A DNA stretch of 64,000 nt from Scyliorhinus canicula (taxonomy: Eukaryota), in contig NC_052146.1 in assembly GCF_902713615.1 (NCBI RefSeq), positions 161,434,853 through 161,498,852 of the forward strand, given 5' to 3'. Under the pieces are notes generated by a model, which saw only the letters and a list, made by a program, of their open reading frames with translations, was not told where the DNA came from and searched no databases. Below are positions 12,790 to 14,700 of the stretch, one piece after another; position 1 is the first letter of the stretch; each line of letters opens with the position of its first letter. The translations under genes and the position numbers were made by a program.

Positions 12790-14700
12790 ATACTTTATTC
12801 GCCCGTATTACTCCCACCAATGTCCCAGGAATGTTCTCGGACAATTCTGAAAGGTTGAAAAGCGGGATCCAGCAGTTGTAAAGGGCGCCTGGTTGTGTTG
12901 GATAAGCGGTTCCATTTTCCATCTCAGCTTTCCCGCTGTGTCCGTTCCAACTCAGTGGGAAGAGCTGGGAACCTCTGTTAAAACAGGGTCGACATTTTTT
13001 TGAACCATCATCAATTATTTGGCCCTCCCGACATTTGCGGGGTTTGTTACTTTGAACCACAAAAGGTCAGGGGATTTTTTTGACCTGGAAGTTCATTGTG
13101 GTCTTTCTCCTGACATGCAATGTTTCAATCATTCTGATTAAATGAAGGAAGGGTGTTCGATCCTTTGCAATCGGTTGTTTTCCAAAAGGGCTAAATTAAA
13201 ATCCAGCAGATTTTATTATTACCGAATCAATACGTGTCGCGTTTAGAAAACGCCAGCATGTGTCAGACACTCGGGGTTGATATTGGAAAACCTCTCGTCA
13301 TTGAAACAGTGATTGTTTGCACGGTAGTCCCGGCTCGATTCAATCCCCCAACCTCGGCGCCGCTGCTGATCTTTCAGTTCATGAGCACTTGGTTCAATGC
13401 AGCGCGAGCGGCGCCAGAATCTAGGCCATTTGCAAAGACATTTGCAAGCGGGAGGGGAGAGAATTGATCTAGCGGCACGATCCATAGCCCAGATAGGAGA
13501 TGACTAGAAGCGATAGTGGCTTTGGCAGCTCGCCGCTGAGCATTAAACGAGTGCCGGCTAACGTGGGAAAGAAGTTGTTGCGAGAAGTGACAGAGGTGGG
13601 CAACTGAAGAGAAAAAGACAACGATCATCAGACTAAACATGGTCTGAAAGGATCTTTTAAAAAATGTTTTCATTAAAGAGCTTTTGCCTTATGGTAGCGT
13701 ATGCGCGGTCCCTCCGTTGTGACGCGGAGTGTGGGGGTCATGTCTGCTCTTGATTAATAGAACAACACTTAACTACAGTGTGTTTATGTGTTTGCCCGTT
13801 GTCTTCTCTTTATCATAGGTGGTCACTCATTTAAGCTTAAGCAGAATGAAAGCAGGCTGCAGTCTGATGTTATGTTTCTGTCTCTCCCTCCCTGTCTCTT
13901 TTATCATAGGGACTCTGGTCCAGGGAGCTGGAACCCTCAGAGCTGTGAAACAGTGAAAACACAAGCAGCACACACTATATGTCTTTGTAATCAACTGGCC
14001 ACTTTCGCCATCTTAGCCCAGAAACCGAGAGATTCGGTGAGTATTGTAACAAAAAATAAAATGCCTGATTGCATATCACACCTACAGGCTGTTTTGGAAT
14101 TCATATTGTCTCATAGGTTTCAGAGATTGCAGTGAGATTTAGCTGATGTGTCTTCTAATAATATCTGGGAAAATAACTAATATTTAATTAATTTTACCAA
14201 GGGTGTTTTGCACAAAAACACCGCATTACATGTTATGTACATAGCTTGATCATTTTTTTAAAATCACGGATTAAGATATTTTGTGCAACATGGTTACACG
14301 GAATTAAGTTTTTTTCTCAACAGTGATCAATAAAGGTTGTTATGAAATTGGAAATGTTTGGCACGTTGCTGGTAGCACACTACGTTCTAACCCCAGTTGA
14401 CCATGAACCTTCACACCTTTAGTGTGTTATTGATTGCCTGAGGCGAGCTGCGAGGCTTGTGGCATTCACGTACAAATCAAATGTTTTAACTTGCAAAGAA
14501 AATGCCGGTGACTTCGTAAAAAATAAAATAATACCATCTAAAATACTTCTGAACGGTGATATTCTTGAGTCAGATGTTTTTATGTTATGACTTTAACAGA
14601 AAGTTGCTGATCAGTAATTTATGAATAATTTGTTTCAGTTTGAAGTAATCCCGGTAGCACAGTTAAACCGGTGAACCTAAGCATGTAACAAATTGGGTCT
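12790..14700. promoter_or_regulatory. TE-free, CpG-retaining island around the GPS exon; candidate internal promoter
   Basis: About 35 CpG by hand count in 13200-13740 at roughly 50% GC, whereas other non-TE stretches here are CpG-poor. No recognisable repeat for about 2 kb. Confidence 0.45.
13910..14036 (+). CDS. ADGRB2: Internal coding exon of an ADGRB (BAI) adhesion GPCR, GPS motif plus Stachel; closest to ADGRB2/BAI2
   Basis: Pyrimidine tract + AG (13908-13909) and GTGAGT donor (14037-14042); phase 2 in, phase 0 out. Translates [42 protein letters not shown], with W-x4-C...C-x-C and TFAILAQ typical of a BAI GPS. TQAAHT matches BAI2 as I recall it (BAI3 TDASHT, BAI1 LDALRT). Family call is strong, paralog call moderate. 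Confidence 0.88.

Follow-up and report, generated by a model that had tools for sequence, protein, structure and literature searches.

Here, we describe a 64,000-nt stretch of the genome of the shark Scyliorhinus canicula (NCBI RefSeq assembly GCF_902713615.1, contig NC_052146.1, positions 161,434,853–161,498,852 of the forward strand; hereafter the window), which carries the GPS-motif exon of ADGRB2, a gene for a G-protein-coupled receptor (GPCR) belonging to the adhesion class, and, a short distance upstream of this exon, an alternative exon that is spliced to the same acceptor. In a PDB search, the GPS-motif exon of the window gene matches BAI3 (E = 1.6e-11) and ADGRB2 (E = 3.2e-10). The shark genome contains three ADGRB loci, C1 (the window gene), C6 and C10. 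A wrasse ADGRB3 protein finds its best match at C6, which marks C6 as the ADGRB3 locus, and C10 is the ADGRB1 paralogue. A sturgeon ‘ADGRB2-like’ protein compared with the large C-terminal exon matches the C1 gene with 59% identity (276 bits), C6 with 41% and C10 with 29%. Because this protein matches C1 above both C6 and C10, sequence comparison identifies the window gene as the ADGRB2 orthologue.

The ADGRB2 gene extends over about C1:160.54–161.77 Mb, or roughly 1.2 Mb. Its GPS exon is bounded by the acceptor ...tttatcatag|G at 13909|13910 and by TCG|GTGAGT at 14036|14037. The canonical preceding exon (..NPHCVVWDDSKT; ..GTSNPHCVVWDDSKT) lies at about C1:161337055–161337135, approximately 111.6 kb upstream and beyond the window, and the intron before the GPS exon measures roughly 112 kb; the alternative exon thus lies in a very long intron, at its extreme 3′ end. 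The next exon after the GPS exon encodes the first transmembrane segment (TM1) and is found at G000:C1:161585651-161585754, 136,762 nt downstream.

Many small assemblies of public sequencing runs contain the GPS exon, and several hold far more of 13200–14036 than the exon alone explains. We aligned the assembled contigs of four public runs (X1, X3, X9 and X16) to positions 12520–15520 of the window. X1 and X3 represent one organism (A) in two studies and X9 and X16 a second organism (B), and the RNA-like evidence comes from two species in three studies. X16 has even cover throughout the stretch, at about fivefold depth and with approximately 4.8% differences, and behaves like genomic DNA from a related species. 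X1, X3 and X9 have zero cover at 12823–13125 and at 14136–15246, and all three contain one identical joint, 13593->13908 (‘skips 314, GT..AG (cut +2)’), which corresponds to 13595^13910 and connects a donor, GAG|GTGGGC, with the GPS exon's canonical acceptor. The flanks of this joint are 32, 109 and 129 nt long, with no mismatches in X1 and X3, and the joint is absent from the DNA-like X16, which covers the entire stretch. Because the three runs share a GT..AG joint that is missing from X16, X1, X3 and X9 represent spliced RNA, and a real alternative exon, joined to 13910, is present in the stretch upstream of the GPS exon. The lack of cover at 12823–13125 and 14136–15246 further indicates that the RNA-like signal is not plain pre-mRNA. 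The features of the locus are as follows.

13150–13760, no strand assigned: single-copy CpG-rich patch, a candidate non-methylated island and promoter by its composition and copy number, spanning the alternative first exon.
13188–13595, + strand: alternative untranslated first exon; the 3′ end is exact and the 5′ end is the furthest reach of a contig.
13588–13590, + strand: TGA that stops the receptor frame two codons ahead of the donor (...TGA CAG AG|G GAC TCT...).
13596–13909, + strand: GT..AG intron of 314 nt between the alternative exon and the GPS exon, from the joint in X1, X3 and X9.
13664–13698, + strand: open reading frame (ORF) of a mini-exon proposed in a first-pass annotation that used the letters alone; unsupported, with no joint and a pattern of chance frequency.
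13910–14036, + strand: GPS-motif exon of ADGRB2, from the PDB matches and from contigs that end or join exactly at 13910 and 14036.

The body of the alternative exon is covered by X3 over 13194–13442, by X1 over 13309–13593 and by X9 over 13387–13593, and contigs start in it at about 13188–13194, at 13309 and no later than 13387. At its 5′ end, the X3 contig has 6 unaligned letters and the X9 contig 22. No joint enters the exon from upstream in any contig of X1, X3 or X9, and the 5′ limit of the X3 contig has no AG acceptor, as positions 13192–13193 read TA. X1 additionally contains a contig at 13595–13759, which represents unspliced RNA, and one GPS-exon contig that ends exactly at 13910. On the basis of this exact end, X1 holds both the canonical and the alternative upstream connection. 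In X3 and X9, by comparison, the alternative connection is the sole one assembled for the GPS exon. The X9 contig (993 nt, depth 73) leads from the alternative exon through the GPS exon and onwards for 635 nt past 14036, with no branch at 13910. Because contig depths are not readable as expression levels, the appearance of a dominant form is only an impression. Within the same alignments, a near-duplicate of the acceptor region (13805–13818 compared with 13895–13909; tctctttatcatag / tctcttttatcatag) lies 90 nt upstream of the true acceptor and is used by no contig of the runs aligned to 12520–15520. X1 also includes an exact 224-nt contig at 15292–15515 in the downstream intron, an isolated transcribed fragment adjoining an old repeat (15533–16550).

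The patch that contains the alternative exon is distinguished by its CpG content. Over 13150–13760 the observed/expected (o/e) CpG ratio is 1.05, with 36 CpGs in 611 bp, as compared with 0.45 for the whole window, and the 400-bp segment starting at 13151 has the top CpG o/e rank across all 64 kb. The G+C content is 0.48 over the patch, 0.50 over the alternative exon and 0.535 over 13300–13600. Relative to the usual definition of a CpG island, the o/e of 1.05 over 611 bp of non-repetitive DNA lies above the threshold of 0.6 over at least 200 bp, and the G+C content is borderline against the threshold of 50%. CpG islands in cold-blooded vertebrates are often less GC-rich. The segment 13150–13909 matches only itself in the 4.22-Gb assembly; this single copy rules out a repeat origin of the patch. 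The single-copy block around it (12510–15530) is bounded by the repeats 10340–11029 and 15533–16550. Other CpG-rich patches that we examined, 11957–12510 and 26134–26738, are high-copy repeats, and the patch at 51250–52600 overlaps a copy of the 11957–12510 repeat family.

We also considered an intron-hosted small RNA near the patch. A search for known RNA families in Rfam yields nothing at gathering score across the window, and the matches within 12500–14300 are at chance level only; on these scores we rejected the possibility. The match at 13597–13690 resembles the C/D-box small nucleolar RNA family snoR44_J54 but scores 21.8 bits (E = 0.48), where the gathering score is 48; GGCAA/TTGCC terminal pairing is present and the D box absent, and we judge it to be due to chance.

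The alternative exon is non-coding for the receptor, because the TGA at 13588–13590 shuts the receptor frame; further receptor-frame stops lie upstream of this TGA within the exon, and from none of the ATGs in the observed first exon does the receptor frame stay open into the GPS exon. The GPS exon contains no in-frame ATG and is therefore 5′-untranslated in the short transcript, which has a 5′ untranslated region (5′UTR) of up to 538 nt. Four upstream ATGs are found in the alternative exon (13258, 13381, 13397 and 13500). Those at 13258 and 13381 share the receptor frame but meet stops inside the exon, the ORF of 13500 has G at −3 and extends across the junction, and the GPS exon has an additional out-of-frame ATG at 13979. 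The TM1 exon begins ...ttttcag|AGC ATG GAA TTT ACA GGC GTC CCA, in which the ATG is codon 2 (C1:161585654) and reads into TM1, and in the spliced mRNA this AUG would have the context AGCAUGG, with A at −3 and G at +4. Because the TGA at 13588–13590 closes the frame and the GPS exon is without an ATG, translation is predicted at the TM1-exon AUG. The predicted product, MEFTGVPSV..., would start around eight residues before TM1 and form a seven-transmembrane (7TM) protein without the GPS motif, the GAIN domain or the Stachel sequence ATFAILAQ. The upstream AUGs may damp its translation, depending on the start site used.

The GPS exon itself bears on how an ectodomain-free receptor might arise. 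The cleavage triad (13986–14021) reads Q-L|A rather than H-L-S/T, with no catalytic base and no nucleophile. As neither the His base nor the Ser/Thr nucleophile is present, autoproteolysis by the standard mechanism is excluded in the full-length receptor, and an internal promoter would then be the sole route to an ectodomain-free form. Human ADGRB2 and ADGRB3 have been reported to be cleavage-deficient (PMC13062082).

Comparison with paralogues and other vertebrates places the predicted start in a wider setting. The TM1-exon Met is codon 2 in all three shark paralogues, ADGRB1, ADGRB2 and ADGRB3 (for example, NMENADMPSV). Among annotated proteins, a search turned up 7TM-only models of all three genes in many vertebrates, including skate, sevengill shark, basking and white sharks, elephant fish, zebrafish, frog, snake, birds and a rodent; nearly all of the roughly 20 that we inspected start at the TM1-exon Met, as does the skate ADGRB2-like X2. 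We give these models little weight, because some may be truncated gene models. In another elasmobranch, Logan RNA contigs L016–L019 (positions 1–240) represent ADGRB3 short-isoform mRNAs, in which a CpG-rich untranslated first exon with an in-frame TAA is followed by the GPS exon and then by the ORF MDNADMPSV; the GPS exon is 94% identical to the shark C6 exon. The 5′ ends of L017 and L019 carry what we take to be the tail of a SMART template-switch oligo, which marks them as capped 5′ ends. The ADGRB3 first exon from L018 has no match in the shark genome, and the ADGRB2 alternative exon and promoter region show no similarity to the regions upstream of the C10 and C6 GPS exons beyond the coding exon. 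Likewise, a cross-species search for the alternative exon with an ORF spanning the GPS exon gave no match, partial ORFs of a shark ADGRB2 short isoform were sought without success, an exact look-up of a 69-codon upstream ORF returned nothing and a literature search found no publication describing such a promoter for ADGRB2. The GPS exons of shark ADGRB1 (C10:31991300-31992800, L011) and ADGRB3 (C6 upstream of 191454380, L012) are located in or beside mildly CpG-enriched DNA, with an o/e of 0.6–1.5 against a local background of 0.1–0.5 for ADGRB1. Internal promoters at these two loci would fit this enrichment, although not decisively.

The arrangement at the shark locus closely parallels that of mammalian ADGRB1. 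In human and mouse, intron 17 contains near its 3′ end untranslated first exons that are joined to exon 18, which encodes the GPS motif, and translation begins at an ATG in exon 19 (MEKAT) (PMC11711277). Parag et al. described several new first exons from this internal promoter, which was confirmed by a reporter assay of a 2.2-kb human ADGRB1 fragment and by exon-2 knock-out mice, and the short transcripts give bands of around 70 kDa (PMC11711277). Features of the ADGRB1 type found at the shark locus are an ADGRB host gene, a first exon just upstream of the GPS exon, an untranslated exon spliced to the normal, canonical acceptor, and a first in-frame AUG in the TM1 exon, whose Met stands a few residues ahead of TM1 (MEKAT as the start in BAI1, MEFTG as the predicted start in shark). 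The predicted shark product would likewise consist of the 7TM region and tail, without ectodomain, GAIN domain or Stachel. In ADGRB1, several start sites cluster in an active-chromatin, CpG-type region, and the shark patch, with its several contig starts and its CpG composition, may be comparable. In contrast to the ADGRB1 intron-17 type, the shark paralogue is ADGRB2 and the lineage is cartilaginous fish, the first exons of the two genes share no sequence similarity, and the second mammalian ADGRB1 form, with a new in-frame ATG and a 60-residue N terminus, is not seen in shark ADGRB2. The evidence also differs: ADGRB1 is known from transcription start site sequencing, a histone mark, a reporter and immunoblots, and shark ADGRB2 from assembled contigs.

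Related arrangements occur elsewhere in the adhesion GPCR family, in which transcripts resembling C-terminal fragments (CTFs) arise from internal promoters in approximately half to two thirds of the genes (PMC6667449, PMC11039983). Short isoforms of ADGRB3/BAI3 from an alternative promoter have been reported (mouse knock-out tables in Pharmacol Rev 2026, PMC13197933; Knierim et al. 2019, PMC6667449; PMC13062082), and CTF-like ADGRB3 transcripts persist on disruption of upstream exons. The layout of the elasmobranch ADGRB3 contigs is the same as that of shark ADGRB2, but ADGRB3 is another paralogue, and its first exon has no placement relative to the GPS exon in the shark genome. The mouse Adgrd1 variant ADGRD1-6 is a CTF transcript from an internal promoter (Knierim et al. 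2019, PMC6667449; Kuhn et al. 2024, PMC11039983). It resembles the shark case in starting near the boundary between the GAIN and 7TM regions, in having its first AUG at or after the Stachel and in encoding a CTF-like receptor with a tethered agonist that is truncated or absent. However, ADGRD1-6 starts within GAIN-coding sequence, its ORF begins 7 residues after the cleavage site and part of the Stachel is kept, whereas shark ADGRB2 would use a separate non-coding exon and lose the entire Stachel.

On the basis of these observations, we consider it likely that the patch at approximately 13150–13760 is an internal promoter of the CpG-island type and that it constitutes the shark ADGRB2 counterpart of the source of the short ADGRB1 isoform. 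Transcription would start within about 13190–13390, and the resulting RNA would carry the observed untranslated first exon ending at 13595, which is joined through GAG|GTGGGC to the GPS-exon acceptor at 13910. The transcript would then continue into downstream exons, to which the 635 further contig letters presumably belong. Translation is predicted at the strong-context AUG, codon 2 of the TM1 exon (G000:C1:161585654), probably damped by up to four upstream AUGs, and the sequence predicts a product of a few residues followed by TM1–TM7 and the cytoplasmic tail, without the adhesion ectodomain, the GAIN/GPS region or the Stachel tethered agonist. Under this reading, we would expect a start inside approximately 13150–13400, an mRNA that runs through the transmembrane exons, MEFTG protein at the membrane and an unmethylated patch, as the retention of its CpGs suggests.

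Several points weigh against this interpretation. The G+C content of the patch (0.48–0.54) is borderline by classical CpG-island criteria. Contigs cannot show 5′ ends, strand or abundance, and the terminal letters of the X3 (6) and X9 (22) contigs remain unaligned. The RNA nature of the runs was guessed, although the splice argues for RNA. That X9 continues past 14036 into transmembrane exons is something we infer. Sequence constraint on the exon is weak, as organisms A and B differ at 4 of 207 nt against a background of approximately 4.8% (Poisson P = 0.03), and its 5′ part (13211–13265) carries 5 differences. The 5′UTR is long (up to 538 nt) and holds four or five upstream AUGs, so that little or no protein might be made. 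Finally, some of the 7TM-only models may be truncated gene models, the skate model being on a 170-kb contig.

Some of these points would be accommodated by a transcript that is real but unproductive, in which RNA from a regulatory element or weak promoter splices to the host acceptor and upstream ORFs block translation. Such a transcript would be in keeping with the four upstream ATGs, with the ORF of 13500 that has G at −3 and crosses the junction, and with the long 5′UTR and weak conservation of the exon. We nevertheless regard this explanation as unlikely: the main AUG lies in an optimal context (A at −3, G at +4) and is conserved in all three paralogues as the second codon of their TM1 exons, the equivalent mammalian ADGRB1 transcripts do yield bands of around 70 kDa (PMC11711277), the spliced form in X9 is the sole assembled connection of the GPS exon, at a contig depth of 73, and starts at 13309 or about 13387 would skip one to three of the upstream ATGs. 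A different account would assign 13188–13595 to the full-length pre-mRNA, either as an internal cassette (‘poison’) exon or as a partly retained intron that brings in stops. The 5′ end of the segment is taken from contig reach, the unspliced X1 contig at 13595–13759 points to some incompletely processed RNA and the X3 and X9 contigs have short unaligned 5′ tips, all of which leave some room for this account. Against it, the X3 5′ limit has TA in place of AG (13192–13193) and no joint enters from upstream; RNA-like depth is zero in the preceding 300 nt and in the downstream intron; an internal exon of at least 400 nt would be unusual; the X9 contig has no competing canonical junction at 13910; and a promoter agrees with the CpG-rich composition and with the precedent in mammals. 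We therefore find the cassette or retained-intron account quite improbable, and less credible than an unproductive transcript.

The first-pass annotation had proposed that an internal promoter and alternative first exon in this CpG-rich, non-repetitive stretch make a short isoform of an ADGRB2-like gene, through a coding mini-exon that opens at ATG 13664, ends at GC 13698 and is spliced by AGC|GTATGC to 13910 to give a receptor with a partial GAIN domain. Its assignment of the gene agrees with the matches of the GPS exon and with the sturgeon protein, for which C1 is best, and its description of the stretch is borne out by the o/e of 1.05 against 0.45 and the single copy in the 4.22-Gb assembly. 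The letters are also as it gave them (ATG 13664 with A at −3, in-frame TAA at 13658–13660, AGC|GTATGC at 13698|13699, acceptor 13910), and the phase matches. Precedents for a coding leader exist, in that transcript 7/3 of human ADGRB1 encodes 7 new residues that read in frame into exon 18 (PMC11711277), and an RNA-derived cyprinid ADGRB3 protein starts MREEKRQRKHR and then enters the GPS exon. However, the 13698->13910 joint occurs in none of X1, X3 and X9, and the sole contig across 13699, that of X1 at 13595–13759, reads through it. The true donor is GAG|GTGGGC at 13595|13596, the proposed donor is without AG at −2 and −1, and ATG 13664 falls inside the 314-nt intron of the observed transcript. 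Pairs of an ATG and a phase-2 GT are moreover as frequent in 13200–13909 (14 in 710 nt) as in shuffled sequence (14.2 ± 6.8). The coding leader, the partial GAIN domain and the new Cys offered as a substitute for the first GPS Cys find no support, as the receptor frame is shut by the TGA at 13588–13590. We consider the mini-exon model largely refuted and its being correct extremely improbable. The proposal of an upstream exon survives in the spliced exon of X1, X3 and X9, whose position fits an ADGRB1-type promoter, with a different anatomy; that of a short 7TM isoform survives as a predicted 7TM-only product that starts in the next exon and has no incomplete GAIN domain. In short, the general idea of the first-pass annotation holds, its exon anatomy was wrong, and the arrangement is one already known from mammalian relatives.

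Our analysis extends the layout known for mammalian ADGRB1 and, by knock-outs, ADGRB3 to the third paralogue and to cartilaginous fish. Its presence in shark ADGRB2 implies that the layout has persisted over more than 400 million years and that it probably serves a function. It is possible, and we suggest it only tentatively, that a promoter upstream of the GPS exon is ancestral to the ADGRB family, predating both the split of ADGRB1, ADGRB2 and ADGRB3 and the divergence of cartilaginous and bony vertebrates; in shark ADGRB2, with its Q-L|A triad, the promoter would then be the sole route to an ectodomain-free receptor, and the Stachel-less short form would be the main product of the gene in some tissues. 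The GAIN domains of ADGRB2 and ADGRB3 cleave poorly or not at all (PMC13062082), and CTF-sized proteins in tissues may therefore stem from such promoters rather than from autoproteolysis. Shark ADGRB2, with its uncleavable Q-L|A triad and yet a short transcript, offers a clean natural test case. In practical terms, the gene model should be corrected to include the exon 13188–13595 with its donor at 13595|13596, and knock-outs or antibodies aimed at the N-terminal half of the receptor would miss the short product. We regard the finding as one of moderate interest, for its evolutionary depth and the uncleavable GPS motif, that would not surprise a specialist.

The remainder of the window contains further repetitive and compositional features. 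The repeats 10340–11029, 11957–12510 and 26134–26738 are high-copy interspersed elements, each with at least 13,000–24,000 first-look candidates genome-wide. The 10340–11029 repeat is young, with copies that are 88–91% identical, and the other two, rich in both GC and CpG, look like CpG islands. One further CpG-rich patch is found at about 45600. A tandem array at 3873–4264 is built from 28-nt units in around 10 registers, and a run of about 31 G residues occupies 23148–23178.

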